Source of the DNA: Corallochytrium limacisporum Hawaii
Lineage: Eukaryota > Protista > Pluriformea
Reading direction: 5' to 3'
NCBI GenBank assembly: GCA_002811645.1
Contig: PDIP01000073.1
Coordinates: 105,524 to 169,523 of the forward strand
Length of the DNA stretch: 64,000 nucleotides
A program made the position numbers and the translations under genes. The notes under the pieces are model-generated. The model did not search any database, had not been told where the DNA came from, and was given only the letters and a program-made list of their open reading frames with translations. Shown one piece after another: positions 17,948 to 60,230 of this stretch; the first letter of the stretch is position 1; every line of letters begins with the position of its first letter.

Positions 17948-18369
17948 TTTTGCTAAGCTCTGTCGTTCACAATCCACACAAGCGTATTACGAAACTTTAC
18001 AAAACTACGTTCACATGGCTTAAACACCATTTCTCCTCCATACAAACGCACACGCTGTCTAACTACCTCCTGCCCGCGCGGATCAATCGCGGGTCTGCAA
18101 GTTGGATTGGGCCGACACGCGGTGATTTGAAGGATTCCACAATATGTATATTAATTTCGCCAGTTTTCCGCATGTTCTCTATTTGGCACTTGTCCAGATG
18201 CGCAGATACTTAGCGTACTCACTGTATCAGCTGCGGGTCATGTTAGTCGTACAGCGCTTCATAACCACCCGAAGACCCAAACCGTCAACTGGTGCTTTGG
18301 AAAATTGCTTTGGCTTGCTGTCCCTGAAAACCCCTGTTGCTCATCGTACAAGAGCGCCATCTACCATCC

Positions 18370-18990
18370 GTTTCTGGCCGTTGATCGGGTGCTCGACTGC
18401 TGGTGCTCGACTACAACGCTTAACTCTCTTCTTTCTTGGTTCTCACTGTTAATTTTTCATAGAATCACAATACTTCCGTTGGGCACCCCGTGGGAAGCGG
18501 ACATAACTATCTTAACGCAGTGGAGAGGGGTCCGTTTTCTCGCATGTTGTTTTTGTGCGTGCGCTCTCCGGCCAGATAGCAGTGCCCTCTGTAACACTCA
18601 ATGAACCGCGCCAGGATAGATCTTGGGCTCATGGCTTCCTAGAATTCCAATGGCCTCGCCCTTATGAACTATGACCTACGCACACCTGTTGCTGGTGATA
18701 CGAACGGAGCAATTACATCCTACGCACTCTTTAGAACTTTCTCTCTGCATGCCTGGATGAAGCCCGAATGTTTCGTTGTTGATTGTTGGAGATGGTTATG
18801 GTGATGGCGGTACTATGTCCGGATTCGCCGTAAAGTGAAACGCAGAATTGTCCTTCAGCACAAGGGGAAGTGAAGGTCAAGCTTCTCATGTGCACGCTTA
18901 CACAGCTAAAGTGGCTTGTTTCTGTACCGCGCGTCGATCAAACTCTCATGCAAAGGGTTCCCACGCACTGGAACTCAGAAGACTCTCAAT
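18370..18990 (+). pseudogene. Possible decayed hAT/ZBED transposase fragment
   Basis: VLDCWCS (18389-18409) resembles hAT DxWTS, and LMQRVPTHWNS (18945-18977) resembles LIQDVPTRWNS. They are about 190 codons apart in different frames with stops between. No TIRs seen. Confidence 0.35.
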
Positions 18991-19307
18991 GTTGGGGCCG
19001 AGAAATTTGACACAACTGAAGAAAATTTCTCTGGTGCGTAGAACTAAAGTTGCTTCGGACAGGGCACGGCTCCGTTCCGAAGAGATCATTTTCAGTATTG
19101 AATGAACTGAATCTTTGCTGACCCAACACGGTGCAAAAATTAACGACACGGGTACCCATTAAACAACCCGCCTCGCCGCAGGAGCAAGTCGCTGTGGGAA
19201 AGGGGAAGCGGGCAAGTAAAGGTGCAGAACTCGCTACAATTTCACAGCACCTTTGAGATCAGACGGACGACCTCCATTATCTCCTCGAACAGTGCCGGAC
19301 TCTTTGG

Positions 19308-19483
19308 GTCAGTACTTGTGCATTGGCTGCCTTCTGATTCTCCCGAAACTTGTTGAGCACTGGTGCTGACGGAAGCCTACGTTGTGCGCGGAAGAGTGAA
19401 CAGCTCAATGGTATTTCATGTGGTGAGGGTAGCTAGAATAGCATTCTGAATTCATATACTAACTAATCTGTCGGGTATCATAG
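19308..19483 (+). other. Candidate spliceosomal intron in the BCAT 5' leader
   Basis: Donor GTCAGT at 19308, branch point TACTAAC at 19457-19463 and acceptor TAG at 19481-19483, 17 nt before the ATG. Confidence 0.55.
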
Positions 19484-19500
19484 TTCCAATTAGCAACAAT

Positions 19501-20706: not shown

Positions 20707-21319
20707 ATGACACCGTCGTATACTTCATACGCTCTCACATCATGATCACAACACCACATCACACTACCATACGAAAACCGCATTACATTGAATCTATCAT
20801 AGAATACTCATGGCATCGATGTTAACACAGGACTGGTTGTCAGAGGCCCCAAGGCAATGGTTTCTGCACGCTCCACTCTCCACTCTCTCAAGAGTCCCAC
20901 CATCATTTCTGCCTATTCTAGGGACTACCACCAACTGAACCCCTCCTATTCCACTAGCCATGAAAGCTCCACTATTCCCTCCATTATTTCACTATTGTCG
21001 CATAGTAAATGTACTCAATATGTGCGGGAGTCCCGTTCCCCTCCCCTTGCGAACCGCGCGGGTCAGAAAGGGCATCCGGCGAGGCCAGGGAGGAAGCTCG
21101 GGGAGTAGGTCAACGCGCCGCAAGTGTCGCACATTGATCGAGTGCGCAAGTTTGTACTATTTAGAGTGACGGCAAGCAGATCACACCCATGTGGCCTATG
21201 ACGTCTCTCTATACTTGTGATGTTCGGCGTGGTTACAAAATAAACCTTAAACAATGAGGGTGAGCAGACGGAAGAGTTAAAGGAAGAAATCTTCAATAGC
21301 GTACAGATTTGCTCATAAG

Positions 21320-26003: not shown

Positions 26004-26122
26004 GTTCACGGCTGGCAGCGGTAGGGAATTGAGAGTAGACAGTTCGGATTTCACCCGTGCTTTCATAAATTTCCATGTTTCCATCCCACTAGTAATTCAG
26101 AAGAAATGCATCGTGCCAATAT

Positions 26123-28870: not shown

Positions 28871-29559
28871 GGTGCTCTTTTGGGATGATTCCTATCTGAG
28901 AGAACGTATCATTGTGTAGTACTGCGTTTGCGTGTATGGTAGATACTGACTTCATTCGCCGCCAAAGATCTGTGACAAGTTCATAGACTCTGCTCCCTTT
29001 GATGTCTTTGGTTTCCCTTTGATGTCTTTGTTCAGTCTCATATACCGGTAAGTTTAGGGATAGGATTCGAACGAGTTCCTTGTATGCGATAAGAGGGATG
29101 GGATTGAGAGGAGTGTTCCTCAGCGCGTCAGGGCTCTGATACCCAACCGTCGAATCCCATCCATACTCACCCACCTAGATGCTGTCATCGCGGGTTGGCA
29201 ACCCACCAACCCGCCTCCATACATGGCTAGGGATTATTGAAAAGTAGAGATCGGATACGCAATACGCTAATCAATTTCCTATTGCGCGGCCACAACCGGC
29301 ATTTTCATAAGGGGAATTTCAGGCGACACTGGGGTTTTATGTATTCTCTATCTCTATGTTGCATTCTGTCTCGAACGGGCGTCGCTTTGCGTGTGAACTG
29401 CGAACTGTACTAGGCCGGAAAATTACTTTTTTAATGAACTCTCTCTTGAGTATCGGGAAGGCTATGATTAAATATGATCATCATATATCAGCTGATTTTA
29501 TCCAATTAAATCAATGATTTATAATCAAAGCAGGCTGCACAACAACCTATTTATTGCTT

Positions 29560-32500
29560 ACATCGCTTGAGTGCAGTTGGTCGATATGTCAACTTTTTGG
29601 GGGCCGAGGCCCCACTAGTTCAGTGTACCTGCGAATTCTCCTTTGCCCCAGCCGAGATATCGAAGCGTCAGGTATCCTTCTACTCAGAATCCAACACACA
29701 CAACCGTTCAGTGTCCAATTCCTAGTCAAAGCATAATCTTATCAAACCCCTTCTCGCGATAGCGGTGTATGTATAGTGGCGAGATATTCGTATGCTTGGT
29801 GCTCCCCAGCCTCCCCCAATCTCCTCCTTGCGCGTACCTGCGGAATGGCATTCCTGGAGGGATTTGTGAAGTAGCGGTGCTCGTCGGCTGCGCATTTCAT
29901 ATATTCGGCCCCTGCTGGCGTCCGGCAGTCTTTGGTAGTGGTGAACCTTTTGTGTTCAAAGGTGCGGGTTTCGCTCACCACCTTTCACGGGTTTAATATC
30001 CGCACAACTCATAAAAACAACCTTTCAGTACATACATACACCACACCCTACTTGCAACGTTTGCCGCTCCCCAGTCCCACCGTTAACGGCCGAGTCTGAG
30101 TTTTCACACCAAATGCGGCCATACACGGCTGCCGTAGAACACAGGAGGCTTGAGAACACCTTATGAAATGCTGCGCAACTGCGGAGAAGATGAAGCGATA
30201 GGATTGCTTATGCGTCTCACGCTCTGTATTGTACGACTGCGCAGGGGCCGCGGCCTTCATACAAACAGACTGTTTAGTATATAAACCAGAGGTCAGTAGT
30301 CGCATCAGGTGTGGCATGGCCGGGCTTTCGGTAGCACTGGGAGTGTGTGGAGCTTTTTCTTGGCAGGAGTGGTTAAGGGATTTACAACAAACAGAATTCA
30401 TCATTGGAAATTCGGCCCCGGTATAGGATATAGCAAGGACTTCATTGAATGTAAGAAATGGTTGGACCAATTGCTCCAACCGCAATACACGAGCTCCCCC
30501 AAGCGAGCAAACACTCAACAACCAGCCATCCCCGGATTGTGGCGCATCCATGGGTAGTAAAGAAATGTTGTTGTGGCGGCACTTGGTACTTGAACCTTTC
30601 TCCTGGTCCGCCCATAGTAGGTGCTAATGCTATTTATAACTCATTCTCCAGGCGTGATCCCGGGATATTGCAATGTGGGGGATGGCCTTACCTGAAGTTC
30701 GATGTGTTGGTGCCGTCCTTGTTTGCGTGAGCGTGTGCTGACCGAAGGCGGGTACTAGCAGACGCATTTTGAAGTACCGAAGCAAATGGTGCGTTCGTCG
30801 TCATAGCTAGGTTTACGCAGGTTCATCCGGCGACATACATACACAGCGCACACGCGTTTTATTACGGGTTTCCACTCATTAGCTAGGCTCAACTGCACCG
30901 AAGCATTTGGAACTGCAGGTGTGTTCATTCTGTTTGTGGACTGTGGAAGCCCATAGCACAACGAATCTCCTACCTCGCTCACCTCGTTCACACATCGCAG
31001 ACTCATGGGCAGAATGTTTCTATGCCTCACACTCACACACGGTCATACAGACCACAAGAACACCGTTCATATACCAAAACGGACAATGGAACTAAAATCA
31101 CAGAGCTGCACACTCGCCACCAAGCCAAATCCTGCCATTGCTATCAGTTAGTGTCCGATGCATCGTACTGTCACACCGCTCGCACCTCATTTTCTTCCAT
31201 GTACAATACATGCGTGTGTCTCATGCCAGGATACTGACCGCCAGCTGTCTCTAGTATTGACTAATCATGTCGCTTACTGAAACCAGAGGAACCCATCTGC
31301 GTTGCCAAAACTGGTCCGGAAAACATCCAGAGCTACTTGGAAGTCTGGTTTTGTGGCGTCCATCAGCCAATTAATACGTCGCTTTCATCCACCGAGTTGA
31401 CTCAATCCTCTAATGGCCCTCTAGGACTGCTCTGTGACCCAATGAGCTTGTCCAGCTAATTTGTCGGAGTGGTGCTCCAAGGGACAGTAGCGCTTCGAGT
31501 TCGCACACAAAATCTTACTAATACTGCTGCAAACCCAGCGGACCCCTACCCTACCTTGCAAGAATTTTCCCACACTACCCCTGTGCCATTCCTGTCTGGT
31601 GTGCGACTGTGGTGGTCGTTGTGGTGCAAACCGGTGGGAACCCCAGGCACGACATTGCGCAGAAAAGATTCGTCTCTGCCATTTATCTCTCCCACCAATA
31701 CACAATCCGGAGTATCATTGAGACGGAGGAATTTTGAGTTATATTTTTGCGGAGACGCGGGCAAATACCAGCTCTTCCATAGCCTTGATATTGCGCTTAG
31801 TATGTCCTGGACGTGTGGCTGCGGTCCGTTTCGATTTGTAGATAACCCAGATATTCCATTCAAGATGTGCAAAATATCTCTGACCAATTTGTTCCTCAGG
31901 AGAATATTTGTAAGGTGCCGTTCAGTGTCATTAGGGCAGCAATTGGGCAGAATTAAGGTATTCTCCTGAGGACTCTTTCACGGAAATTCCAATACGGGCA
32001 GGTCACCGAAAATGTGCCAAAATGAAAATAGCGACTAAACGATGATGCATTGCTGCAATGGGTACTGGCATACAAAACAGTAGCATATGACAGCTCCGAT
32101 CTTCCCCCGACACTAGTATCTCCGGTGTACGAGATTGCTAGACTGACAGTGTGAATGCGCCTAACCTAGGCGAGATGATAGGAGAATACAGAACAGAAGA
32201 GGCACACAGCGAATGTATGGTTGCGCAATCATCAGAGTAAGGTACCTCACTGTTGTCCTTCAGCGGTACCAACGCCAAACAGAATGTTTAGCTCAGGCTA
32301 AAGCACACAGCAGTGATGTATGCGGTATCCTTCATTTGTATGGAGAAGTTGCTCCCATTTCAGGTGCAGAAAGGGAAGCGCACTACTAACTCCCAAGTAC
32401 GCTAAATGCACATGGTCGCGGTACACCTCCGCCCAGCTATGCGGCTCTTCAGATGATATTAAAATGGAAGGAATGTTTGAACCCAGACCAGAGTCACGGC

Positions 32501-32960
32501 ACGACTGCTGAGTGTTTGACCATTGCATCCCGAATGGCCTGACCGAGCAAGGTTTGCAATGTGGAAGGGAGGAACCATGATTTCGCTTTCTTGCTCATAC
32601 AATACACTTAGAACCTTCGGATTCCGCATTGCGGGCCGAAGACAATACGAGTAAAGTCCGAACTGGCACAACAATGTCACCTCCGATGCAATTTGCACCT
32701 ATCTCGCAGCAACGAGCTGTTTGTACAACGCATGATGCAGTATTGAACACCGCAGTGAACAGGTGCTCCCCTATGGCGTTCGACATTGGGCCATGAGCAG
32801 ACGGGCAAAGTTTTTCTTCCGGAAATTGTCCTTGAGAAGTCGGACGCAGCTTTCTTGAGTCTACGCAGCCAATAAGAGCTGCCAACAATCCCACAAAAAT
32901 AGAACTCAATAGTTTTTCCACATGGCAGCCAAACTCCCTATTGAACAAACTGCACATTGC
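29560..32960 (-). pseudogene. Heavily decayed gamma-tubulin complex component, GCP5-like (Spc97/Spc98 family)
   Basis: Collinear minus-strand motifs across several frames: SNAIGEHLFTAVFN (32783-32742), TLLVLSS (about 32657), LVRDILHILNGISG (31887), NWLMD (31372), DQFWQRRW (31316), FHKVFSSLL...AVY (30168), M-x8-YF (29900) and HQAYEYLATI (29801-29772). Boundaries are approximate. Confidence 0.55.
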
Positions 32961-33919
32961 TCATCCACTACAGCTAAGACGGTAATTCTGTTACGGTTGA
33001 AATTTCCGACTGTTTACCTTTTGGAGCTTGGATCATTATGGCTGGTTGTCAGTGAAGAATAGTTTTCACAAGTGAAGCAGGGCAAAACACTTGCAACCAC
33101 GAGGGAGGGATGCCAGCCTCAGGATGCAGGTCAGAAAAATCAACAATACCATGATACTTCAATTCCTTTCAGAACATTCAGTATTCAGGACATCAACCTT
33201 GGAATTGTGGCATACTTCATTTACTATCGGTGTTGAGCACACAATATGTTTTGTCGCTCATCCCTTATAGTCTCTGACAATGTTCCTTATTTCACAAATT
33301 AGGCGGTTGCCCGGTGCCCTGAAGAATGAGAGACGATTTGGAACACTTTTCGACCGACGGCTACAATTACCTTCTCTTCTCCACTGACAATGACGATGAC
33401 GTTTTCACTAGTGAATGTGTAGGTTGGTATCTGAGAATTGCATATACTACCTTCTGAATTTCTCCCTAGGATGGGCGGAGGGGAGACTCTGATGAAATGG
33501 TCCCTCGATGACCAGTCACTGAGTGAGAACTTCGCCTCCGTTTCGCCCCTCTCATCTAAAGCTGACGTTCGCTCGGATCGGAAATCATTGAACAAGTCGC
33601 CCACTACCACATGTTTAGGTCAGATTGTGTCAATCCATGACATCCCTCGACAAGAGCTGCCTAATCTGGTGTGTTGGGAGATGGTGGTGGTGGGGTTCTG
33701 GTTTCTTGCGGCCAAATGAGTGTCTTCGCACTAGTCATTGCAAGGCACCGCCACCGTGTTAGTGTCGTTTACGAAGACGTGACGACGCATCATAAAACAT
33801 ATAGTATACTAAATTGTTGGAGCTGACCCATCAAACAATGCATTTCGTAGACGGGGCATATATAGTACATATTATCAATGTGTTTGACATACGCAAAACA
33901 AGCAAACAAAAGAATACTC

Positions 33920-34760
33920 TGACGGGGATAGATACAATTGAGTAAGGTGAGTATGGATACGGACAAGTGTCCAATCGAAGATTTGGAGCAGAGCTCACTC
34001 GCAAAGGGTCACAAATGACCCTCCCCCAACAAGTTGGCTTGAGAAGTTTCACATGAATACTGGCGACTCTGTCGGTGAGAACTACCCACAACGATTGAGT
34101 CAAGGACCTTACACAAACTGAGCCATTAATACAGATACAGGGTGTCCATTTTCCATTTTCGTCAGCCACCTATACACACTTTTTGCCGGGGATTCAAACC
34201 GTGCCTGTGGCTGTACTTGCCATTTCCAGAACGGGACGAAAGAGGGAATGATGCGGACCCCATCAGCGGTAAGGAAGTAGGCGTGCCTTTAGAAACTCGG
34301 GCTGCATCGATGATCACTAAAATTTTGGTGCCGCTTGACATGGTTGTTTCGGGGAAGCCAATACTGAGGAATGGTGGAGGGAAATGGGATTACTTCATCC
34401 ACAAACTGTTCCCGCACGGCCCTGGAAGGACAGCTACTACTACTACTACTGACCTGCACGAGGCAGTATCAGCACGCACAGTCCATGTAACTCGGGCAAT
34501 CGGTTGGTTTAGAATGGTTGCTGCTGCAGTAGTAGATTTCCGCGTCTCCAACCTCAATAGCCTATATACTGAAGTACAGACTCGACATGGTGTCAAAATT
34601 ATTCCGCTGGCTGGGACAAGGAGCAAGGAGATGAGTTGGGGAAGGAAAGTTTTGCTCGGGATAGTGGAAATGCATGGAATTGGGATGAGACATACGACAG
34701 AAGCAAAAAAACTCTTCTGAGTGTTAAGGAGAGATCGTAAAATATCGCTGCACGAGCAAA
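33920..34760 (+). pseudogene. Decayed protein kinase, family unresolved
   Basis: Ordered remnants: IDTIE*GEYGYGQV (33928-33969), PLIQIQGV...HFLPG (34123-34191), DYFIHKLFPHG (34388-34420), VVDFRVS (34529-34549; CGC is one change from GGC, giving DFG) and AGTR...VLLG (34610 onward). Confidence 0.4.
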
Positions 34761-37700
34761 CAAACATCAGTTAGCTTGGAAACACGGATCGTTTCTGATT
34801 GCTGTCGATGGAGTTGCAGTCCGAAGGTACGATACAGCCGCTCAGTCCGTTGAAACTAGGTACTTTTCAATATATTGACTGCGATTCTAGTTGTCTATGT
34901 TTGTGGGCTCGTATAGTGATCCAACTGCAATGAAAAAATTGGATTGAGACTGCTGAAAGGGGGGAAGTCCATCCGAATGAGGCACTCTCTGCACCTTGTT
35001 TGCTTGCCTTTTGCAGTGGATCCGGAAACGAGTGGAGGTCCTGGCACAGGAAAGGGAGTGGGTCTCACAACTGGTGCACCAGAAATAATGCGAGTGAGAG
35101 TGACTGACAAAGGGGAGAAAGGAAACAAAACCAGTGCCGCACCTTCTTGATTCAATTTAATATACTTCACATATTAGTGTCGCCCGAAATTTGTTTGTGT
35201 TTTGGGTTCAATTTCCACACAAATGGCGATTTTTTGCTTATCGATCAACATGCAATAGCCTGTGGTGTGGTATTGCCGAAGAGTGAGAAGAAAAAGGACG
35301 ACGAAGAAAGGAGAGGAGAAGAAAATGTATAAGAAAAAGTATACAAATTGTGGAAGGACAAACAGGAAGGGAAAATTATAGTTCTTCCCATGAAGACGGA
35401 GTCAGAGATAAGACTTGTTTTGATCAACAGCTGACTCTGTGCAAGGTCCTAGGGCCTGACAGTAACAGCAATTTTAAGTTCGCGCTTCCTTTCCCTTGCT
35501 GACCACACAGCTTTTGTGGTATGAATATACCTACGTCGCGGAATTGACTGTGTTGAGCAACTGCACCAAAACAGAGTCTCTGTCGGCAGTGTCAACGATA
35601 TGAAATACAACAGACACTCCCTTCCGCGCTCATCTCTATAGTTTCTATGCTTCACATAAGGCAGAAACAGACGACGGCGACGTAGCCGACACCGTAACCG
35701 TACTCCGATTCATCACACAGACCACACCGAATCTTGTGGTATTCCATGATCAGTGAACTACAGTCAGGCCCTTTTGCTGATCCGCTCTGCGTCGGATGGT
35801 GTACGCCGACCGCTTTTACTTTAAGCGGCGGCGCCCTCCCACCTCGCGGGCGGATCCCCCCCCGCACGCGGTGTTGCAATTCCCCTATCAAGTATTCTTT
35901 AGCAATTTTCTTCAGTCTAAGTGGGACACATCAGGTCGTCTCAGTTCATCGATGCAGTTGCTTAGTCTTGGTTTTCCTATTTGCTGCCCTCCGCCATGTG
36001 TGGCGCCGTGAGAAGGGGTTCCATCGCGTCTGGCACTCCCAATGCAACAACCACGAAACACCACTCTAGGTTTGTCCACATATTCACCACTTACCATAAG
36101 GGATTCTGTCTCCTTGTGTTCAAGGAGAGCTGATGCTGTGGCTTCACACTAAGCAGTCATGCCCTTTCAGCACCTCTGATGGAGCGGTTCGGGAGACCAC
36201 CCACCAGCTGTGAAATTACACGCTATCACGAAGATCCAATTGTTTCGACTGTTAATGCTTGTACTGATCGCAAGGTACGGTAGATCTGGCAGATTGTCCG
36301 GACCTACTACTTGTACAAGAGTGCTTTTTATTTCGATCGCTGGGCGCGATGATAGGTCTCCCAACGGCATTATCGTGCCCAGTCTTATGTCTCTGATGAG
36401 GAGCAGCATTTGTCCTAACCGCCTTGACCTTGTTCGAGTTTCCAATGCCCATTGGGTCCTGGGAAAGCCGCACCCGTTTGCTTGTCAGAGCCGACCGCCT
36501 CAAAATAGTCGCCGCCCAACACATAAGCGTCTGTGTGGGTGGGTGGGCCGACTGCCATTGTTGGCATGGGTGGAGGGGTGTCTATCCTCTTCCGTCCTAT
36601 AATCCCTACGATTGGGTTAGAAATACTCCTCTGTCATTGATTCATTGAAGGAGACCGTGGCCACCAGAGAACAATTGCCTAGCACAGCAGGCTCCGCCAC
36701 TCCACCCACTCTCAAATGTCTGTCTGGCTCCCTTCCCCCCCCCCTTCCCTCCTGTCTCTCTACCTGGGTATTTAGTGAATACCCTTTCGCTTGAGACCAA
36801 AATGGCAAGTTGCTCTTCACAGTAGCTTGGAATTTTCAGCTTCACCAAGCTTCTCGTGATTGGGATTTTTAGCTTCTTTTACCAAAGAAACTGTGTACGG
36901 GGACTTCTCAGGGAGATAAAGAGCACGGAGCCGAAGTAACGAGGCCGAGGACAGTCCAAGGCCGCTTGGAGGGGGCCGGAAGAACGGAAGGAACGGAAAG
37001 TGCGTGACTGCAGAATAGTGTCTGCTTCCTTGGTAGTGGTAGCTCCGCACCTTACGAGAACTGAAGAAAAATGGGCTGTGGTGGTGTTGTTTTGGACCAA
37101 ACACCAAAGATATCAAATATGTAATTATAGGATGGCCTGACACGGGAGACGGGTATATTCGTTTTGGTCTCGCCCACTCACATCCCTTCTGAAAGCTCTT
37201 GTTGATCACTGTTGAGGTGATCTGATATCTGTGTCTCTAGCACTGTCCATTGCCTGCGAAGTGTGGAAGGAAAAGGGTGCTGGGGACCTGCCGTCCCCCC
37301 CTCTCTCCCCCCTGCGCAGCCCCGCCCCGCGGAGGGGGAGGGGGAGGAGGAGGAGGAGGGGAACAGGGGATCAGATCGTCCAAGAGTTTGCACACTGAAA
37401 CCATTCCAGGTAGAAAGGGTGTCAAAAATAAAGGAAGAAAATTTCGACGCGGGAAGTATCTCCGTGCATTTCAAGTCACTTATATTCGCAGGGTCTCTCC
37501 CGTGTACTAAATTTCTTCACTGTTTTCTCGTCTCAAACACAAAGTTCTTCGGGCATGTAACGTCAGTAGTCAAATCTTCGATCCGCGGAGCACGCATTGG
37601 GAGGACGTCCTCCACATCACCCTGCACCTACTGAAAGAATTTTTCTTTTCAAGGTTCAATATCTCCGAAGCTACAGTAGTAGAAGTATGGATCTGACGAA

Positions 37701-38265
37701 ACAGAGTGAAGAGTGGATACCTCGGGAGAGTGCGAAAAAAAAATGGAAGGGGGAAAGGCAACAAACTGCTTCCCCCCCCCCCCCCAAAGTGGTGTTCACT
37801 ACGATTCTTCGGGGAGGGTGCACGGGTCTCCCTTTTTGCTTCCTCCCTTTTGCTTTCTATTGCTAATACGCCTGACTGTGTAGGATAGTGCCACTTTGCG
37901 CCTGCCATCTCATCTCCGCATATCAGCCAGCGAAGCCAGCGAGTGACTCCACTTTCCCCTTCTCTGTAGAACAATTATGGACCATTCAGTCTCTCCACTC
38001 CCTGAGCCTGGTACGCTGATGGTTAAAGTGTATCAAGGTCTGGGGCAAACCCTTTATGTTCACTTTCACTGCTAACCTGTTTTGGTACAAAAAGATCCAA
38101 ACATTAATAGAAATATAATCGTGTAAATGTATGAAACATAGCCGGGTATTTCATATAGAAAATTGAAAAGAATTACCAGACTTTATCGGAGAATGCAATA
38201 AGAAGACAGTTCAACCTGGGATAGTTCGTAGATCACAAAGAAATTAACACAGACACACAGGCAGC

Positions 38266-39528: not shown

Positions 39529-39552
39529 CATCCATCCATCCATCCATCCATC
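39529..39552 (+). repeat. (CATC)6 microsatellite in the PP2C 3' region
   Basis: Directly visible tandem repeat. Confidence 0.9.
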
Positions 39553-40215: not shown

Positions 40216-40397
40216 GCGGGCCGGTTTATGTGTGTGAGTGTAGGGACACCTCCCCCCCCCTCCCGGGGGGGGGGGGNNNNNNNNNNNNNNNNNNNNNNNN
40301 NNNNNNNNNNNNNNNNNNNNNNNNNNNNNNNNNNNNGCGGGCCGGTTTATGTGTGTGAGTGTAGGGACCCCTCCCCCCCCCTCCCGGGGGGGGGGGT
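40216..40397. repeat. About 61-bp direct repeat on both sides of a 60-N gap (40277-40336), each copy ending in a C-run/CCCGGG/G-run hairpin
   Basis: 40216-40276 and 40337-40397 are nearly identical. This is probably one locus left unmerged by the assembler. Confidence 0.8.
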
Positions 40398-44533: not shown

Positions 44534-44869
44534 ATGCAGCAGGTACAGAGGAATCTTTTGGGCGTGGCATTGTGCAGTGCCAATCCTGACACTGGCTTCT
44601 ACCGTACTGGTCACTGCCACTGAGGAGTTGAAGACTGTGGCAAGCACGTGATCTGTAGCAAGTTGACAAAGCAGGTCAGGGACTTCACTAGATACACGGG
44701 GGAACCTGCTCCCCTTCGAGGTAAGTGTCTCTGTGCAGACCGCTGGGCAGAGGCAGAGCGCGCCGCGGTTGCACCTCATGTTTTTCTGGAGGCATGCAAT
44801 GAGAAGGTGCTGGAAACCAACCGTTTGGATGTGCTCAGAAAGTATGCAGTCACTAAAGAACAGAAATGA
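44534..44869 (+). pseudogene. DUF2237 family gene with a single in-frame TGA (pseudogene or recoded)
   Basis: ATG at 44534 reads MQQVQRNLLGVALCSANPDTGFYRTGHCH*GVEDCGKHVIC...CLCADRWAEA...VAPHVFLEACNEKVL. The TGA is at 44621-44623. This matches DUF2237 NVLG...TGFYRDG.C.TG..D.G.H.VC...CLCA.RW.EA...VAP.V.L. Confidence 0.75.
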
Positions 44870-44936
44870 GTAAACGCTGGTACACAATAAAGAATCTAGC
44901 AAAAATCGTTATGTAGCAGACTAAATCAAGAGCATA

Positions 44937-49543: not shown

Positions 49544-49649
49544 GGTCACTTCTCTATTTCACATCCATATCATGACGTTCATATAATTCAAAAACAACCA
49601 TCTGACAAAACGCTTCCGTCACTTGTAAACGACTATTCATTGATTGAAC

Positions 49650-53019: not shown

Positions 53020-54689
53020 CACACCTACTTGATTCAAGAGTTTGGGATCCCGGTGCCCTTCTTTGAAGTATGGTGGTGGTTGGAGAGAAGCGGAGGTGGC
53101 AATAGGCCCCTGCAGCGTTGGCCCTTGCCGGGACTCTGCCGATCACCCTCGCAACAAGCCACGCAAGCGCTGGAAAGGGCTGCCGGCTCGGTATCTCATG
53201 AGTCCGGTCCGCCAAAAAAAAAAAGGGTGGGTACCCAACAAAGGGAAACAAGCAAGACTTCGATTGCCGGCGGTTCAGAAAGTCCGGAGAAAATGAGAAG
53301 TCTGCGACATATCAGGAGGGTACTTGCAGCTGGTTGGGCAAGTTGTGGATCGCTCGGCGAGCGGGTCAAAAGGGGGAAAAGGAGGTGGGCCATCCAATGC
53401 GATGGGGCACAATATCAATTAACGGAGGTTGCAATGGGTATGCGCGACCCAGGAATTAGAAGGACAGATCAGGCACATGCTTGAACAGTCTGATATTCTG
53501 AAAATAGGAATTGCCACAGCGTTGCACGACATGACCAGTATTCTCAATGTATGGAGTGACGAGATTCTGCTGTCCCTGATGAATCAACTGTTGCAAGATC
53601 CGACCCCAGAAGTGGTCAACGCCGTCGTCCGCAATCTTGACAATACTCTGACAACAATTAATCACAACTTCCCACTCACCTGGGCAGAGGAGAGCCATCG
53701 TACCCTGTCCAGGATTGTTACCGCAAGCATGACACTTAAAGTAAAGTAGCGGTATCTGGGTACTCTAGTGAAGCAGCTTGTGCACATTATGCCCCTTAAC
53801 ACCAGTAGTGACCAAAAATTTTACCGTCACTGTCCCATGCTTTTGTCATCCTTCATGACAAGAATGTTTTCAAGGCGGTCAAGAGAAGCACTGCCATCAC
53901 CTGGCTCACCTTTTGCGCAACACCAAGGAGGCTGATCATCGACGAGACCTAGTGGATCGTATTGTGGAGGACTTTGCTTATGCGCGGTCATGATACGATC
54001 ATGTTGTGTACATTTGGATCTGTGAAGACTGCCTGAAGATCTTCTCCAGGAAGTTCTTCAAGCGCAACTTCATCACAATTTACTTGTACATGGGAAAGGA
54101 TCCGGTCGAGTCCATTGTAGTACAGATGCTGTTGCTTATTATGCCTCCAGTTAGGAAGACACTGGCTCTTCCTGGTGATGGACATCTACTGAATCAGATC
54201 GCGGATGTGAGCGTTGTCATCGCCAATCAGCTGAAGTCGCCATGGGCCTGCAATGAGTTGAGCTCGATTCTAACCAATTTGTCGGACTACTCACGAAAGG
54301 GTAGGCGGGACTTGTTTCTATCGGGAGAGGCTGTGAAAGCCGATGAGAGAAAAAAGCATGCAGAGACCAATTTCTTTGAATCCGTTGTTCCAAAACCTGT
54401 ACCAACAAACAAATGGGTGCTACTAGTAGACATGAAGGAGGCTATTTCTGCCACCAAGCGCCCCTTTCTAGCGGCACTTGGTACAGTCTGCACGAAAAAA
54501 ACGCTAGCGCCACTAAGTGAACGCGTTCGTAGCGTGCCGATCACACAAACAAGCAGAAGTAAATCGAATGCTTCAGCGAAAAACGGGAACAAGGAGGCCA
54601 GCATCTTCCACAAAGCCTTCTCAAATTTGAGGCTAGAGATGAATCCTCTATCTCACTCTACGCCTTCGCAAATAAAGAAAATCAGATAG
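53020..54689 (+). pseudogene. PPP4R4: PP4 regulatory subunit 4 (PPP4R4/CFAP14) pseudogene
   Basis: Stitched reading WLGKLW...LLQDPTPEVVNAVV...K*RY...SSDQKFYR...RS*YD...CEDCLKIFSRKFFK...DPV...RKTLALPGDGHLLNQI parallels human HLGKLC...LLQDESLEVLDALI...KWRT...SSDQIYYR...KSYWN...CEFIIEIFSKSFFC...DPV...KSTLKIPADKHLLQQL. Stops are at 53747 (TAG) and 53991 (TGA), with frameshifts near 53448, 53834 and 53911. The 5' limit is uncertain. Confidence 0.82.
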
Positions 54690-54764
54690 AAAGTGTATCA
54701 ATTTTAATTGAATTGTACTTTCTAAAAGGATTTATATTGTATGGTATTGAATTCAGTTCCTAAT

Positions 54765-57323
54765 TCATCCATATAATTCGGACGACTGCACATTCAACAA
54801 TTCACCTTCTAGTTCCATAAGACGTCGTTCTAGACCGATATTCACAGCAACTAGGCCGGAGATCCTATCTTGAAGACTTCCGATTTCCGCTTGAGACTTA
54901 CCAACAGTCTCTTTGAGCAAGTCATTTGCAATTTGCACAGCCCTGTCAGTTTCCGTGATGCGATCCCGATATTCTGCAATCACTTTCTTTTGACTCACAT
55001 ACTTCGCTCGACATGAATCCAGTTGGCTACGCAAGTCCACAATCTCTTGATGGATAGTTTGTTGTTCGAGATCTCTCGGGAGACCAACAAGAAGGCTCTG
55101 TCCTTGTCCAGACGATGAAATAGAGGCGATTTCTTGGTTGTACTTCCTTGCTGCAAAGAGCTCATCATTCTTCTTGGTCAGCGCACCACACTGCTGCCTG
55201 AATGTTTCAGATTCTTCTAATGCCTTCTGCAACTTCATATCCAATTCGGCAATACGAATTTGCAAATGATGAATCTTGCTTGATCTTTTTGCATTTTCCT
55301 GCTTTAGACCAGCATTCTCACTTCTCAAATTCTCTAGGGCGGTCATGAGTATTTCCTGCTTCTGGTCGCACAGCCGTCTCACCTCTTCTGTTTCCAACCT
55401 TTGGGCCTTCAATGACTCACTAAGGGTAGCGAGCTCAGAATCCTTTAGTTGCCACAGGTCGTCCAGGTAGGACACCTTGGCATCAAACTCTCGGGCGTCA
55501 GCCAGAGCAACTTGACAGGTATCTAATTGTTCCCTCGTCCGCGCATGGAATACCTGTTCCAAAAGAAGGCGATTCTGTAGCAAGAGAATGCAGTGCTTCA
55601 GTGTCTTCTCATCCCTTAAAGTGGCGAGACTGTATGGATTGGCCATTGCTGGATTAATAACCCTGGCCAGATGGGATTGCGGGGCAAAGGACTCGATCAA
55701 GCAACTCTCATGATGGTGAATTGTATCGATAATGCTGTCATTCAATCGGCCTTCAGCAGAAAAGAGGTTGCACAACATATTCCCATGGTCTCCATCACCA
55801 CGGCTTGGAAGGGTGACCAGGTCCGATGGCTCTGGCTCTCCAATGAATGATTCACCGCCACCGTGGAGAGATGGAGACTTGGCCAGCATGCTAAACAGAT
55901 CACTGTCATCAACTACTGCGTGTTTGGCACTCGTTGTATCGTCCGACACTGTTTGTTGGCGACGCCGGTCCACCGTGGACGCACGTGGCAGAACGGGTAG
56001 CTTGATTACCTTGAAAGGGTCGAATGAGGGAGCCTTTGGGGTTTTCCGCAAGAGGTTTTGATGGAATTGGAATGAATTCGTTCGTTCTTCAATGCTAGTG
56101 CGCAGGTGTTGCAGTACAACCCCTGTGTCATCAGGCACACAGTCCGTCAGGGCGGGTCCTCCAGTTTCTGTCCCAAAGACCTCTGCGCGCAGAAAAGCAA
56201 TCAGTTCCAATGGGAACAAGATGTACAGCTGTGCAAAGTACATGGTAAGGCTATGCGAATAGGATTGTAGAATTGTGGACAGAGTTGTGTTTGCCTTTGC
56301 CTCGCCTTTCATATCTTCTGCGGGTGCTTTAGCGGCGGCTTTGCGTGCTTTCGCGTTGGTCGTTATCGAGCCGGCAGCACCGATGACTTGCCAGGATGAG
56401 TCCTGATTTCCAACAGATGATCCACTGCCCGTGACAGTGATGGGTGTCCCAGTTGTGTCACCGCTTTGGTAGTGTCCCTCAAATGCCAGTTTTTGGCACC
56501 TTATTTCCCAACAAAGGTTCCGCAGCAGCACAGTAAAGAGCAGGTCAGTCTGGCGATACAAGAGCTTCACGACTGTTGGGACAACGAGTGATAGACAATT
56601 CAATGCCCCAGTGATGGTGGTGAGATCCCGATCAAATTTTGCACTCTTGCACACAGCACTCAAAAGATTGAAGTCCATGACTTGACCAACCTCCTCTGTA
56701 TATGCTTTACGAGAAGTCTCGTGCAACAGCATCTCGTAGCACAGTGACAACGCCAACAGGCGGGTCTTCGGATCGGCGACGAAGTCAGCCAGCCTCTGCA
56801 GCCCCCATGGACTTGGTGCGACGGTGGCAAAGAACTTCGTAAGGCTTTGGCAGTCGCCAAACGGATCTTGTTGAAACTCAGTCACACGCTGAGGCGGTAT
56901 TCCCAGATTCTTTAGAGTGGATCCGGTTTGCAGGCATAGCTCGACCATGGTGGTCGAATAGACCCTGGATTTTCCGGCCAAAATTCGCAGGACCTCACCA
57001 GCCAAGCATTTCAATTCATTATTTCCAGGATATTCCGCTGCACTGATAAGAAATACTAAAAGTATGGTGAAATCTCGACTCCAAGGTGTTTCTTCGACAA
57101 ACACTTTGACAATGCGCAACAGGCTTGCATATTTGCTAGGATTTCCGTCCACAGCATCCCGATAGGTAAAGTTAAACTTAGGAAGAACGGCATCGCGAAG
57201 TGAAATTAAAGCCTCTGGACTCAACTCACTCAGTTGCACAGCAACTTCTGGTGTAATGACATAGTCATTGCGCAACTGTGTTAGCACTAAGCGCTCTATT
57301 CGCCCGAGATCGTCATTATCCAT
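54765..57323 (-). CDS. TSC1: Hamartin (TSC1)-like protein
   Basis: FAQLYILFPLELIAFLR resembles FHRLYGMYPCNFVSFLR, ILLLQNRLLLEQ resembles LLLLHNQLLYER, and there is a long C-terminal coiled coil. First in-frame ATG is at 57323. Confidence 0.75.
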   Translation of the reverse strand: MDNDDLGRIERLVLTQLRNDYVITPEVAVQLSELSPEALISLRDAVLPKFNFTYRDAVDGNPSKYASLLRIVKVFVEETPWSRDFTILLVFLISAAEYPGNNELKCLAGEVLRILAGKSRVYSTTMVELCLQTGSTLKNLGIPPQRVTEFQQDPFGDCQSLTKFFATVAPSPWGLQRLADFVADPKTRLLALSLCYEMLLHETSRKAYTEEVGQVMDFNLLSAVCKSAKFDRDLTTITGALNCLSLVVPTVVKLLYRQTDLLFTVLLRNLCWEIRCQKLAFEGHYQSGDTTGTPITVTGSGSSVGNQDSSWQVIGAAGSITTNAKARKAAAKAPAEDMKGEAKANTTLSTILQSYSHSLTMYFAQLYILFPLELIAFLRAEVFGTETGGPALTDCVPDDTGVVLQHLRTSIEERTNSFQFHQNLLRKTPKAPSFDPFKVIKLPVLPRASTVDRRRQQTVSDDTTSAKHAVVDDSDLFSMLAKSPSLHGGGESFIGEPEPSDLVTLPSRGDGDHGNMLCNLFSAEGRLNDSIIDTIHHHESCLIESFAPQSHLARVINPAMANPYSLATLRDEKTLKHCILLLQNRLLLEQVFHARTREQLDTCQVALADAREFDAKVSYLDDLWQLKDSELATLSESLKAQRLETEEVRRLCDQKQEILMTALENLRSENAGLKQENAKRSSKIHHLQIRIAELDMKLQKALEESETFRQQCGALTKKNDELFAARKYNQEIASISSSGQGQSLLVGLPRDLEQQTIHQEIVDLRSQLDSCRAKYVSQKKVIAEYRDRITETDRAVQIANDLLKETVGKSQAEIGSLQDRISGLVAVNIGLERRLMELEGELLNVQSSELYG

Positions 57324-57689
57324 AGTGTAGTTTTTCACATTGTCTCCTTGTGCACACGCTCATTCAGCTGTTGAATGATAACCAGTTGCTGCTTTCACTC
57401 TGCTGCAATGACACCTTTTATTACATACCTTTGTGTTCCTCGTGCATCAGCAAACCGTAAACTCCGAACCACTACCCGGTTCCTACGCGCTCCCCTTACC
57501 CACCCGACAGACGGATGTGACTTATGTCCGTTCTTGAGTGCGGTCGATTTCCAGTGCCTAATCAAGTATACAAAATTAATAAGAAATCAGCCAACAGGTG
57601 TACATTTCTTGATCATTAAACATTCCATATATAGATTGTTATTTTCATATAAAAATAATCATATTGATTGAGAAAGGATTCATTTGAAT

Positions 57690-60230
57690 TTGAAGTGTCG
57701 TCCGCTTCGGATACCCAACACTCATCCCATCCCTTGTCTTGGGTACCTTTGGCATATTGGCCGTTGTTCTGAGTGCCCACTGAGGAGCTGGAATCACGGA
57801 TGTACCGGGAGAGATCGTCATCCAGCAGGGCATGGTACTGTAATGTTTTAGTCTGCTGGGATCCACAGAGTAAATGTGTGACCATGTACAAGGTTTAACC
57901 CCCTGGATTCGGAAGGATCACCTCGGAACACAGGTGAAGTGGCGCCCCGTGCACACAGCACATCTACTAACCCACCCTGCCCACAAAACTGACCTTACAT
58001 GCCACAGTGCCATTCTTGACCGTCTGGACAGAGATCACTGCGGGCATTGTCAAATATGGAAAAAAATGGTGCAGAACAAAGCAGTTCACTGAGAGAAACT
58101 GTTGGACCTCCCTCCACACTGTATTTCCCCGCTGTACCGCACTCCTGTTCCCCTCATAAGCCCCCTCTTTTTTCCCTTCTTTAACCTGGGTGCGGATGAG
58201 TGGGGAAGTCATTGGCGCTTAACAAGAAACCACAGACAATTGGGAGGGCTTAGGGCAATTCGCTCAGTACAAATTGAATGGGGATTTTAGAGAGCAACAT
58301 ATTTGGCGGCGCAAGTAGAATGCACAATTCCTGCAGAAAGTCGCGGTGGTATGGGACAATGCATTCGCGACAGAGTTGATAACAACTGAAGGACCATACT
58401 CAACGAGCAACACGTGAGTGAGAGGTGTTTGGATCCCTCGGTGCATTGTGACTGCTGATCTATGGGCGCCATAATATCAAATATTGCATTGCATTTATAC
58501 CAAAGGGGTACGGGTTGCTGTGTGACCGAGGGATATATACCCCTTGGTCTAACAATTCCTTCGCATCCTCTTTCGGGTGAAGATGGGGTTGGCACCCAAC
58601 TGCAGCGCTGGCAAACACACTGCGAAATATACGAACGGGGAGATCTGGAATTGAATTTTAATTTGTTTGACATCTAATAAAAACAAAGACTACTACCAAT
58701 TTTCGACTTCGCCACCTGATGAACATGTTCACTCCTCCACACATCACACTGCACAGGGGATTGACTTCCGTCGCATATCGGGCTCAAAGGCTCGAAACTC
58801 ATCCTGGTTACAATGTGTTTAGTCATGTCTACTTTTTATGTTATGAATTTATGTTGCGAGAGAGCAAAAGTGTCGTGAATGCAGCTGACATGCCTATGAT
58901 GCAGTCGGTGCGCAGCCTTCCAATCGAGTTTGCACACAAGTTCTAGTCATATGGGGGGAACCTTTCCAGTTCAGCCTCCTATGTTATCAATACTGGTCAC
59001 CATCTGAAACCATCCCATGCCCGTCTGGAGAATTACACAAATTGTGTTGGGGACAGGGACGAAGTGCTCCCATTGTGCGCAGTATTAGTTTTGAAGCAGA
59101 CGGAAGTGAACAGTAGAGAGTGGCACTTAGCACGTCATACAATCTCAAGCGCACATGTTCTCATAGGGCATTGCACCCCTGGACTGAGAGACGGACCTGC
59201 GCTAATTGATGTCACACAGGGACACATTCTTGGTTCAACACTACTGACAGCTCTTGTTGTCACACTATGCACCACCGCAAAGAAGGGTCGCAAAGGAACA
59301 TCAAGGCAACACTCGGCACCTGCCGAAAAGGACCTCTGGAATAACATTACACCTTGTGATCACTCCCTGAAATAGCACAGAGCCGCAAGGTGAGATAGAA
59401 TACTGTACAATTCATCCTCGTGGTCGAAGTTATTGTAAGTGAAAGTTTGCTGCGATTCTATCCAAGCAAGCACAAGGGTCGGCGTCCAACCATTACAAGT
59501 CCAGGTTTCATTGTCTACATGTAGCGAATGCATTTACCCACAGGAGACTAAATACATAGAAAGTATGTACCTGTTCACGTACACAAGGAAATACAAATTC
59601 ACTTTGAGCACGGCTCAACCCGTCTTGGCCACTGAAGTCCTCATTCAACAAGCGAATCGTTGATTGCAGCACCATCTAGTTGTAGGGTACGTACCATGGG
59701 CGTTTGATATACTTTGCTCTGATTACAAACGATGGAGTTTGATAGATTTCGAGAGGAGCTGGCAAGATTTGCGATTTGCATTGCTCTTTCCTTTTTTTGG
59801 TGGGCAAAAAGGGCTGTCCTGTCACAATCTGCAGCTGTGAGCTCTATTGGTCAGATGGATCTATTTGTTCAGAGAGTTGATCCTGTAAATTGACTCGGAT
59901 CATTTTCTTATCACCGGACATCCTGCGATTATGAACAAAGGAGTACGAGACGCAGCTACAACCATAGTAGCAGAACGCTACCACTAAGAGAGGCACAGGC
60001 ACCACCAGTTCCCGCAGAGGAGAGTTTTGTTCGAGCCTCCGCTGTTTATTAGACGGGAGTGGGGACGGAAGCCGACAACAAAGAACACATAGATATATCA
60101 CTTCTCGGCATATTCCCATATTTAATCAAAGTCAGAAGGCATTTTCGTAGTCTGAATCCCCATAGTGAGAATACTGGAACAATAAGGGTTCGACGCCCTC
60201 TGCCTTGGGAGGAGGAAGGGCTGCCATCCG
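57690..60230 (-). pseudogene. Decayed Argonaute (L1-PAZ-L2-MID-PIWI remnants)
   Basis: Collinear minus-strand motifs: TLQLDGAA, ESQQTF (59458), YFRE/HKV*CYSRGPFRQV (59374), VPL, SQC (58451), KPSQLSVVSC (58251), KEGAYEGNRSAV (58170), LYMVTH...QYHALLDDD (57891-57814) and SVIPAP (57800-57783). The span of about 2.5 kb fits an Ago CDS. Confidence 0.75.

Follow-up and report, generated by a model that had tools for sequence, protein, structure and literature searches.

Corallochytrium limacisporum is a single-celled relative of animals with a compact, almost intron-free genome (PMC5560861). The published genome measures 24.1 Mb with 0.0 introns per CDS kb, transposable elements and repeats account for 1.8% of it, and secondary streamlining has been inferred (Grau-Bove et al. 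2017, PMC5560861). That paper reported no pseudogenes, and a full-text literature search for "Corallochytrium" together with "pseudogene" returned unrelated work only. The closest described systems for the present locus are the unitary pseudogenes that follow the loss of a cell structure, for example those of flagellar genes, and two protein families. One comprises the PPP4R4 / PP2A-A-like HEAT-repeat subunits, in which full-length PPP4R4-like members carry PPP2R1A-like HEAT repeats (Pfam PPP2R1A-like_HEAT and HEAT, at approximately positions 190-280). The other is the DUF2237 family (PF09996), with solved bacterial members (PDB 3USH, 4IOH, 2LQ3). Ppp4r4 is listed among 40 candidate cilia genes (PMC3069013), and a cryptic flagellated stage of Corallochytrium is still assumed in the literature (PMC7147346).

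Here, we examine a 64,000-nucleotide stretch of this genome (the window; contig PDIP01000073.1), with searches covering all 24,109,830 bases of the assembly. A sequence-only reading had described the window as a gene graveyard, with gene-sized spacers filled by six relics. We find this observation to be partly confirmed and its interpretation partly supported: the PPP4R4-like and DUF2237 relics score against their families, while the Argonaute, GCP5, kinase and hAT relics fail every family test. In our view the window is probably an ordinary chromosome segment with two genuine single-copy genes that are dead or nearly dead, the other three large spacers being the upstream regions of divergent gene pairs. 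The two relics directly record genes being lost from a streamlined genome; the window gives no ground for taking its spacers, or spacers at large, to be dead genes as a rule.

The layout had been described correctly. Convergent pairs of intact genes are only 106-252 nt apart, the large spacers lie where they had been placed (17978-19500, 28871-38265, 43287-44936, 51462-54764 and 57339-61750), and the adjoining ORFs of about 6 kb are indeed unbroken (2048 and 2024 aa). The density of relics, on the other hand, was overestimated at one per 3-4 intact genes; we count two per approximately 19, and three of the five large spacers have no detectable gene trace. The features are collected in Table 1.

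Table 1. Coordinates of the features discussed (window numbering; a point marks features given no strand)
Feature	Position	Strand	Basis or remark
1.5 kb spacer, EMG1 (-)/aminotransferase (+), claimed hAT relic	17978..19500	.	ordinary divergent-pair length
9.4 kb spacer, anoctamin (-)/PP2C (+), claimed GCP5 and kinase relics	28871..38265	.	no detectable coding remnant
Isolated 17-aa match RNKLVRDILHILNGISG to start of GCP GRIP1 domain	31846..31896	-	4.6 bits, E 0.13
Assembly gap	40216..40397, N at 40277-40336	.	duplicated flanks; outside all relics
DUF2237 ORF (29 aa, TGA, 81 aa)	44534..44869	+	PF09996, 74.1 bits, 1 TGA
Sole in-frame TGA of DUF2237 ORF	44621..44623	+	context GHCH*GVEDCGKH
PPP4R4-like HEAT-repeat pseudogene, recognisable part	53423..54689	+	phmmer, tblastn, local profile
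Frame-2 relic segment, profile positions 383-440	53486..53659	+	hmmsearch E 1.9e-7 among 111 pieces
GT-AG "intron" of annotated model Clim_evm47s225	53741..54038	+	P0001 mapping
In-frame TAG ending frame-2 segment	53747..53749	+	sequence and translations
In-frame TGA within conserved colinear relic part	53991..53993	+	homolog alignments pass straight through
Best-preserved relic segment, frame 0, profile positions 556-713	54003..54473	+	hmmsearch E 1.7e-21
4.4 kb spacer, divergent genes, claimed Argonaute relic at 57690-60230	57339..61750	.	no detectable coding remnant

A DUF2237 reading frame with one TGA

The DUF2237 ORF matches PF09996 over profile positions 8-115, far above the cut-off of 25 bits, and is the sole match in the genome; its 81-aa piece alone reaches 53.7 bits. 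The claim of a DUF2237 relic with a single stop is thus borne out. PDB 3USH and 4IOH align colinearly with both pieces, the codon-bias score is 14.7, and the TGA falls in the column of residue 29 in 3USH, with no insertion or deletion on either side. The ORF differs from these structures in that its frame is interrupted once, by this TGA, and in being shorter by about 13 residues in the loop that carries their GNDLSTP...GDRW motifs. It is either a unitary pseudogene of very young age or a gene that is read through or decoded at the TGA.

We consider it unlikely that the ORF is no pseudogene but a functional gene, with the TGA encoding selenocysteine in a C-x-U motif or being read through. The possibility draws on a frame with no other damage, which matches solved homologs colinearly before and after the TGA, on a strong codon bias, and on a shortfall relative to the PDB homologs that preserves the frame. 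This genome also uses selenocysteine: in a gene of the deiodinase family, a TGA occupies precisely the catalytic FGSYT*PP site. There is also a tRNA-Sec candidate above threshold whose anticodon is UCA, and the TGA of the DUF2237 ORF stands two residues past a conserved Cys. However, the annotated proteome apparently lacks the ORF (a word search with a DUF2237 piece returned nothing from it), and only 67 nt separate its stop from that of the convergent neighbour. In the family consensus, to our knowledge, the column aligned to the TGA is not a conserved Cys. No SECIS-like element was found 3' of the ORF, a weak test in view of the positive control: Rfam's SECIS models run genome-wide and two custom scripts found nothing, and they missed the deiodinase-like gene as well. 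The narrower proposal, in which DUF2237 is a living selenoprotein gene with the TGA as Sec in a Cys-x-Sec motif, is less likely still; if true, this close relative of animals would have provided a new family of selenoproteins.

Long spacers between divergent genes

The 1.5, 9.4 and 4.4 kb spacers make up 15.3 kb of the 20.3 kb large-spacer total, and the flanking genes are divergently transcribed at all three. In a 200 kb control region of the same genome, the median spacer is 159 nt for convergent, 868 nt for tandem and 1236 nt for divergent pairs, the last with a tail to 6.9 kb. Spacers longer than 2.5 kb in the window and control are divergent in 8 of 11 cases, tandem in three and convergent in none; against the 25% expected from random whole-gene death, this divergent excess has P ~0.001 (binomial, calculated by hand). 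The large spacers may well be regulatory. Transposons or repeats were rejected as the origin of the 9.4 and 4.4 kb spacers, both being single-copy in the genome; no tandem repeats were found, and the window contains no tRNA genes or Rfam families.

None of the relics claimed here could be matched to a family. In the 9.4 kb spacer, the 33 ORF pieces gave no credible Pfam match, codon bias is at background, and none of three ATG-to-stop ORFs tested occurs in the annotated proteome; when six spacer ORFs were looked up there exactly, none was found, and two control genes were. What suggested "GCP5" was probably the isolated 17-aa match of Table 1, which was obtained when 314 pieces were searched with a profile of the four GCPs of this genome and is not significant. 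It has no Pfam match and no colinear chain of further GCP matches around it, and its Atlas recognition value of 1011 is like that of non-protein sequence. The domains GCP_N_terminal (PF17681) and GCP_C_terminal (PF04130) are absent from this contig even at E<=10; four intact GCP genes are kept elsewhere in the genome, and the loss of the gamma-TuRC read from the window is without support. Likewise, the supposed kinase yielded no Pkinase or other Pfam match at E<=10 for a 196-aa ORF and three other pieces of 33850-34770.

The results for Argonaute and hAT are similar. None of the 20 ORF pieces of at least 57 aa in the 4.4 kb spacer has an Argonaute-related match (hmmscan), neither codon bias nor ORF counts rise above background, and no RNA contig lies on 57361-58299. 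A six-frame search through stops gave no PIWI (PF02171) candidate genome-wide and matched in the control genomes; for PAZ (PF02170) neither the search nor its control matched, and the hmmscan of the spacer pieces was negative. With the claimed Argonaute stretch matching no family, an RNAi loss cannot be read from the window. The 10 pieces of the 1.5 kb spacer match no hAT or transposase domain, and its ORF lengths are those of shuffled sequence. The hAT dimerisation domain PF05699 is absent from the window, with one sub-threshold match (E 0.23) in the genome.

The appearance of relics can be traced to base composition. Stop triplets are 25% below the mononucleotide expectation and over-dispersed, and the non-coding DNA is TA-poor; because of this depletion, the large spacers, those over 2.5 kb of the control region among them, hold about twice the ORFs of >=100 aa expected from shuffled sequence, without codon bias, and this excess of long ORFs leads to false relic calls. 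The excess was considered as a sign of old coding sequence and rejected, since it occurs in almost every large spacer tested, lacks codon bias and follows from the TA and stop depletion. A crude scan of the control for young relics (broken frames with positive codon bias), which detects only Pfam-covered pieces, found no Pfam-supported pseudogene and one missed RRM gene. Long open frames in the spacers of this genome are no evidence of former genes.

It is quite improbable that the graveyard is real but old, with the three spacers being former genes (Argonaute, GCP5) eroded below the reach of profiles. Relics worn down past recognition would escape Pfam and profile searches, no control spacer is as long as the 9.4 kb one, the GRIP1-like motif lies within the claimed GCP5 stretch, streamlining has been inferred in published work, and the lack of a Piwi match suggests that RNAi was probably lost at some time. 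Yet there are no family matches among the 63 tested pieces of the three spacers and no colinear match chains, and their codon bias (they are the first, second and fifth of the large spacers) equals that of short intergenic DNA. The preference for divergent pairs is unlike random gene death, the genome-wide excess of long ORFs in spacers is explained by composition, and the four GCP genes remain intact.

The PPP4R4-like relic and its annotated gene model

We turn to the better documented of the two dead genes. With a 231-aa piece of the relic, phmmer found 25 relatives at E<=0.001 besides the local gene model, including a chytrid armadillo-type protein (E 1.6e-8) and an annotated PPP4R4-like insect protein (E 2.8e-5), the one annotated sequence on which orthology to animal PPP4R4 rests. 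The named relatives come from flagellated lineages, namely chytrids, a blastoclad and an insect. In tblastn searches, homologs match the relic with E down to 8e-17. A local profile of 919 positions, built from 9 full-length homologs (860-1150 aa) and searched against 111 pieces with hmmsearch, detects three colinear segments (E 1.7e-21, 1.9e-7 and 0.038), and the relic is colinear with positions 383-713.

The lesions can be followed along this alignment. The frame-2 segment, which has a codon-bias score of 14-16 and is HEAT-like by language-model features, runs into the TAG; beyond it, frame 2 still matches weakly and colinearly as far as ~53845 (profile positions 486-503 at 53792-53845). Between ~53846 and 53894 the frame changes from 2 to 0, in which profile positions 520-551 follow at 53895-53990. 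Then comes the TGA, which tblastn reads through in a single frame over 53901-54293, and the best-preserved segment, with 24-38% identity to at least 20 homologs (tblastn). Profile positions 440 and 520 are 235 nt apart where 240 nt are expected, and the sequence between them was therefore once coding and not an intron. Of the damage originally claimed (two stops and three frameshifts), at least two stops are seen and one frame change is found. The relic thus differs from the PPP4R4 / PP2A-A-like subunits, with which it aligns colinearly, by its broken reading frame.

Neither end of the protein can be detected in the relic. Profile positions 1-382 are undetectable, and of the family positions some 380 are missing at the N-terminus and 200 at the C-terminus. 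The PPP2R1A-like HEAT repeats of the N-terminal half could not be detected either, the best Pfam match being HEAT with E 0.15 in a 108-aa piece; this is consistent with decay and does not agree with an intact family member. The genome contains no close intact paralog, only a distant HEAT-repeat paralog on C15; an origin of the relic by recent duplication of the C15 protein was rejected, as tblastn gave no match.

The RNA data consist of assembled contigs of two 2015 runs, where a hole in contig cover proves nothing. Within 52300-58299, the contigs of the two samples cover only 54756-57360, which is the adjoining gene in full length, and neither a contig nor a joint was found on the relic. The suggestion of cryptic genes repaired at the RNA level finds no support in this result.

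The published annotation describes the relic as a 304-aa spliced gene, Clim_evm47s225 (EukProt; P0001), mapping to 53477-53740 and 54039-54686. It is very unlikely that this is a working, shortened gene from which a recently created intron removes the damage. In its favour are the existence of the EVM model with GT-AG borders at 53741 and 54038, and the clear codon bias kept in both exons. However, the skipped stretch 53741-54038 is similar to and colinear with the homologs, including conserved sequence at 53895-54038, and the genome is essentially intron-free (PMC5560861). The N- and C-terminal family positions are missing, the 304-aa protein has no Pfam domain, and no RNA contig or joint was found although both RNA runs cover the neighbour, which is convergent and lies at a distance of only 78 nt. 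For the breaks of the relic generally, introns were rejected as the cause on account of the published intron density, the colinear sequence in between and the absence of an RNA joint. Most likely, the "intron" is a gene-prediction device that skips the lesions. By inventing an intron, the model appears to conceal a pseudogene, which calls for caution in gene-content studies that use this proteome.

That the lesions are sequencing or assembly artefacts is extremely unlikely: the assembly does have N gaps with at least one mis-joined overlap at 40277-40336, and the lesion in DUF2237 consists of one base triplet outside the read-compared stretch, but Logan contigs of two DNA runs, both from the assembly's own sample and not an independent strain, reproduce 52300-58299 with 0 differences at a word depth of 172-831, the data are Illumina reads assembled with SPAdes in careful mode (PMC5560861), and the adjoining 6 kb ORFs are unbroken. 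Since the read-derived contigs are identical to the assembly there, the lesions within 52300-58299 are not assembly noise, as the sequence-only reading had held. The assembly gap lies within the PP2C/Snf7 spacer, clear of every claimed relic. Its 61-nt flanks are identical at 59 of 61 positions; they represent either overlapping ends of contigs or copies of a repeat, and no long open or coding frame touches or spans the gap.

Gene loss and the flagellum

Taken along the chromosome, the probable reading is as follows. A PPP4R4-like HEAT-repeat gene is broken by two or more stops and a change of frame, with N- and C-terminal thirds that can no longer be recognised, and a DUF2237 gene carries one TGA; both loci are presumably non-functional. 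Each occupies a normal gene place, convergent with its neighbour at 67-78 nt, and supplies the extra length of its own spacer. The 1.5, 9.4 and 4.4 kb spacers are probably long shared upstream regions of divergent pairs, with no detectable gene remains, and the TA-poor, stop-depleted non-coding DNA yields roughly twice the expected number of 100-190-aa open frames, which passed for relics. Ongoing gene loss, one of the explanations originally offered, fits the two relics, both unitary, but does not extend to RNAi, to the gamma-TuRC or to relics throughout the spacers. Fractionation after duplication is not borne out: the spacers of 9.4 and 4.4 kb each occur once in the genome, and the relics have no sister copies that could be found. 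It follows that losses of RNAi, of the gamma-TuRC or of a life stage should not be cited from the spacers of this window, where the broad dead-gene claim fails.

The PPP4R4-like relic resembles the unitary pseudogenes that follow the loss of a cell structure, such as those of flagellar genes, in being single-copy and broken by stops and a frame change, in being unseen in the RNA contigs, and in keeping codon bias and 24-38% identity to its homologs. It differs from flagellar-gene pseudogenes in that the ciliary role of PPP4R4 is only a candidate one, and DUF2237 has no link to flagella. We infer that the loss of the PPP4R4-like gene belongs with that of the flagellum. The relic, as a further well-documented unitary pseudogene from a candidate cilium gene, would add weight towards a recent flagellar loss in Corallochytrium, and not towards a hidden flagellated stage.

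Gene packing and the nature of the large spacers

The genome of Corallochytrium limacisporum has been described as 24.1 Mb with 7,535 genes, 1.8% transposable elements and repeats and 0.0 introns per kb of CDS, and its authors, who assembled Illumina reads with SPAdes, inferred "a secondary streamlining process" (PMC5560861). Our genome-wide searches were performed on an assembly of 24,109,830 bases in 286 contigs, in which the window is C257:105524-169523. By ORF listing and Pfam scans, the window contains about 19 intact genes, including EMG1, a class IV aminotransferase, an Rrp6-like exonuclease, a PALP enzyme, an anoctamin, two PP2C phosphatases, Snf7, an F-box/WD40 protein and a kinesin. 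Between neighbours that converge there are 106-252 nt, or 928 nt in one pair, and three small intact genes were found in apparent spacers (COX20, MEA1-like and CG6151-P, see table). The tight packing and the positions of five large spacers are thus as the sequence-only reading had placed them.

Two local features can be mentioned here. Within the PP2C gene at 49650-51461, 17.5 copies of a 15-bp unit follow one another at 97% identity (50452-50714). The run of N at 40277-40336, outside all claimed relics, is an assembly gap between PP2C and Snf7 genes. Its flanks (40216-40276 and 40337-40397) share 59 of 61 bases, with C9...G12 runs at the ends, and no open frame of more than 61 codons touches it; the two sides are probably overlapping contig ends or unresolved short repeat copies.

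The sequence-only reading proposed that the large spacers are filled with six decayed genes. In the spacers lacking family support for such relics, the codon score (best of six frames, stops neutral) is at the level of short intergenic DNA, with 0-2% of the scored windows above 10, compared to 39-60% inside genes. The spacers of 9.4 kb (28871-38265) and 4.4 kb (57339-61750) are single-copy, and these two, as well as the one of 1.5 kb, all separate divergently transcribed genes. As control we used 200 kb of contig C242 (100001-300000), with genes called from ORFs and codon bias, a procedure that finds all intact genes of the window. In this control, the median length is 159 nt for convergent spacers (longest 838 nt), 868 nt for tandem ones (longest 3432 nt) and 1236 nt for divergent ones (longest 6851 nt). 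Of 11 spacers longer than 2.5 kb in window and control together, eight are divergent, three are tandem, one of these being the spacer with the PPP4R4-like relic discussed below, and none is convergent. If whole genes had died at random places, 25% would be expected to be divergent (P about 0.001, binomial, calculated by hand). This bias indicates that the long spacers are mainly long shared upstream regions, which we infer to be regulatory.

Features located in the window and, for the last two rows, on other contigs of the genome (G000), with the label of the extract given first
Feature	Position	Strand	Evidence or remark
CG6151-P family protein	517-969	+	E 1e-10; small intact gene in apparent spacer
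MEA1-like	2584-3048	+	E 8e-9; small intact gene in apparent spacer
COX20	10118-10534	-	E 1e-20; small intact gene in apparent spacer
DUF2237 ORF	44534-44869	+	PF09996, 74.1 bits; one in-frame TGA
PPP4R4-like relic	53423-54686	+	codon usage, protein homology, profile map
Relic segment	53486-53659	+	frame 2, profile positions 383-440, E 1.9e-7
Relic segment	53895-53990	+	frame 0, profile positions 520-551, E 0.038
Relic segment	54003-54473	+	frame 0, profile positions 556-713, E 1.7e-21
Lesion, TAG	53747-53749	+	in recognisable part of PPP4R4-like relic
Lesion, frame change 2 to 0	between about 53846 and 53894	+	profile map
Lesion, TGA	53991-53993	+	homolog alignments continue uninterrupted across it
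tRNA-Sec candidate	L006:1501-1587 = C110:371719-371805	+	Rfam, 48.8 bits (threshold 47)
Deiodinase-family gene	L017:6872-7693 = C242:176872-177693	+	PF00837, E 1.6e-19

Claimed relics without family support

Four of the proposed relics could not be upheld. For the Argonaute relic (57690-60230), a Piwi model gave zero candidates in the whole genome, searched across stops in all six frames, and did match control genomes; PAZ was matched neither in this genome nor in the controls. The 20 open pieces of at least 57 aa in this region returned just chance-level matches to unrelated families. For the GCP5 relic (29560-32960), two GCP domain models recover four intact GCP genes, all on other contigs, and nothing in this region even at E<=10, and tblastn matches of the genome's four GCP proteins are not enriched here. 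When these four proteins are made into a profile, its sole match is a stretch of 17 aa, RNKLVRDILHILNGISG, at 31846-31896 on the minus strand (4.6 bits, E 0.13 among 314 pieces). This match looks like the beginning of the GRIP1 domain and probably gave rise to the "GCP5" label, but no further colinear GCP match accompanies it, and in a language-model search the piece containing it resembles non-protein sequence. At the proposed kinase (33920-34760), a 196-aa ORF and its neighbours have no Pfam match at E<=10. For the proposed hAT element (18370-18990), ten pieces gave no hAT or transposase match, and the only match to the hAT dimerisation domain genome-wide is below threshold and on another contig. 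Another 29 pieces across the 9.4 kb spacer have no credible Pfam match, and none of six spacer ORFs (ATG to stop) is present in the annotated proteome, which contains both of two control genes.

The composition of the non-coding DNA accounts for the relic-like appearance of these spacers. In nearly all large spacers tested in window and control, open frames of at least 100 aa occur at about twice the frequency found in block-shuffled sequence, and these spacers show no codon bias. Over 49 kb of pooled spacer DNA, stop triplets counted on the two strands fall short of the mononucleotide expectation by 25% and of the dinucleotide expectation by 14%, owing to TA depletion, with TAA, TAG, CTA and TTA at about 60% of expectation. 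They are also over-dispersed (variance-to-mean ratio 1.55). As a result, open frames of 100-190 aa are common in the non-coding DNA of this genome, and they do not testify to former genes.

The DUF2237 ORF and selenocysteine

The DUF2237 relic with one stop is, on the other hand, real, and it is the only PF09996 match in the genome. It reads M...GFYRTGHCH, TGA, GVEDCGKHVIC...CLCADRW..., and both halves are colinear with bacterial homologs of known structure (3USH and 4IOH) and meet at the stop without an indel; one loop is about 13 residues shorter than in these structures, with the frame kept. We consider a young nonsense pseudogene or nonsense allele the probable explanation, with moderate confidence. 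That the TGA is instead decoded as selenocysteine (Sec) or read through appears rather unlikely, and the remaining probability falls to another explanation or an error.

The Sec reading draws on two other loci. A deiodinase-family gene on C242 has as its sole in-frame stop a TGA exactly at the catalytic position (NFGSYT*PPY), and is a probable selenoprotein gene. A tRNA-Sec candidate shows a UCA anticodon, a D-stem of 6 bp and a long variable arm; little of its acceptor stem is paired, and ARAGORN makes no call on it. Taken together, the two loci indicate that some TGAs are decoded as Sec in Corallochytrium. Rfam models and custom scripts found no SECIS downstream of DUF2237, which carries no weight, since these methods likewise detect none at the deiodinase gene or elsewhere in the genome.

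In the red alga Cyanidioschyzon and in a number of green algae, tRNA genes can occur in permuted form. Close to the deiodinase gene, at L017 about 7985-8110 (C242:177985-178110, minus strand), there is a candidate circularly permuted tRNA-Ala(CGC) gene, in the order D-loop to 3' acceptor strand, a 26-nt linker, 5' acceptor strand with D-stem, and nine T. Rfam labels it "tmRNA_permuted" (37.7 bits), and ARAGORN calls tRNA-Ala once the two parts are joined in silico.

The PPP4R4-like relic and the extent of gene loss

The PPP4R4-like relic is well supported. When codon usage is scored after the pattern of the window's intact genes, with stops neutral, frame 2 over 53450-53700 and frame 0 over 53850-54450 are clearly positive. 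A search of 1.84 billion representatives with the open piece 53994-54686 (231 aa) gave 25 relatives at E<=0.001, the local gene model excluded. Those named are armadillo-type proteins from two chytrids, Phlyctochytrium and Homolaphlyctis, and one from the blastoclad Paraphysoderma, together with an insect "phosphatase 4 regulatory subunit 4-like" protein, and PPP2R1A-like HEAT repeats are present in the homologs. A profile of 919 positions built from nine full-length homologs maps three pieces of the relic in family order (see table); positions 1-382 and 714-919 are undetectable at the locus. Between profile positions 440 and 520 the genome has 235 nt, compared to 240 nt expected, which means that this DNA was once coding and not an intron. 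The earlier count of two stops plus three frameshifts comes close: both stops are there, and at least one frame change is demonstrable.

In the published annotation, the locus is modelled as Clim_evm47s225 (EukProt, 304 aa), with the lesions bridged by a GT-AG intron of 298 nt (53741-54038) that takes out conserved sequence colinear with homologs. In an essentially intron-free genome, this intron is most likely a prediction artefact.

Over 52300-58299 there are zero differences between the assembly and contigs of two DNA runs, which come from the same sample and thus check the assembly alone. In two probable RNA runs of 2015 (X3 and X4), contigs cover solely the neighbouring 857-aa gene (54756-57360), with none on the relic or on 57361-58299, which is weakly consistent with silence. 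The X3 contig is identical to the assembly over the neighbouring gene, and that of X4 differs at five of 2595 bases within 54766-57360 (55308, 55722, 56187, 56799 and 57031). X4 is thus probably from a second strain, which would be useful for dating the lesions.

The nearest other match in the genome lies on contig C15, in a HEAT protein of 930 aa that is intact and resembles the homologs in another, more N-terminal region. A recent duplicate as source of the relic was rejected, as tblastn gives no match at all between this protein and the relic. With its closest paralog this distant, the relic is a unitary pseudogene.

Ongoing reductive loss is supported for the PPP4R4-like and DUF2237 loci, and for no further locus. 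Fractionation after duplication is unsupported, with relics that are unitary and tested spacers that are single-copy, and so is repair at the RNA level, with no transcript seen. The picture of a gene graveyard is partly right as observation and largely overstated as interpretation: there are two real unitary relics in 64 kb, and no detectable graveyard. A coarse scan for young pseudogenes in the 200 kb control gave none with Pfam support, so the density of relics in the window is not obviously high. In the same control, L010:668-1509 (C242:100668-101509, plus strand) holds two open pieces, 188 and 137 aa long, that overlap in different frames and have positive codon bias, their sole Pfam match being a weak one to Gasdermin_C (E 0.003); it is possibly a frameshifted gene without known family.

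Ppp4r4 is one of 40 candidate cilia genes listed in a functional screen (PMC3069013), and the named relatives of the relic belong to flagellated lineages. The PPP4R4-like relic may thus be tied to the loss of the flagellum. The other relic, DUF2237, may be a selenoprotein gene. Studies of gene content based on this proteome may score some pseudogenes as genes.
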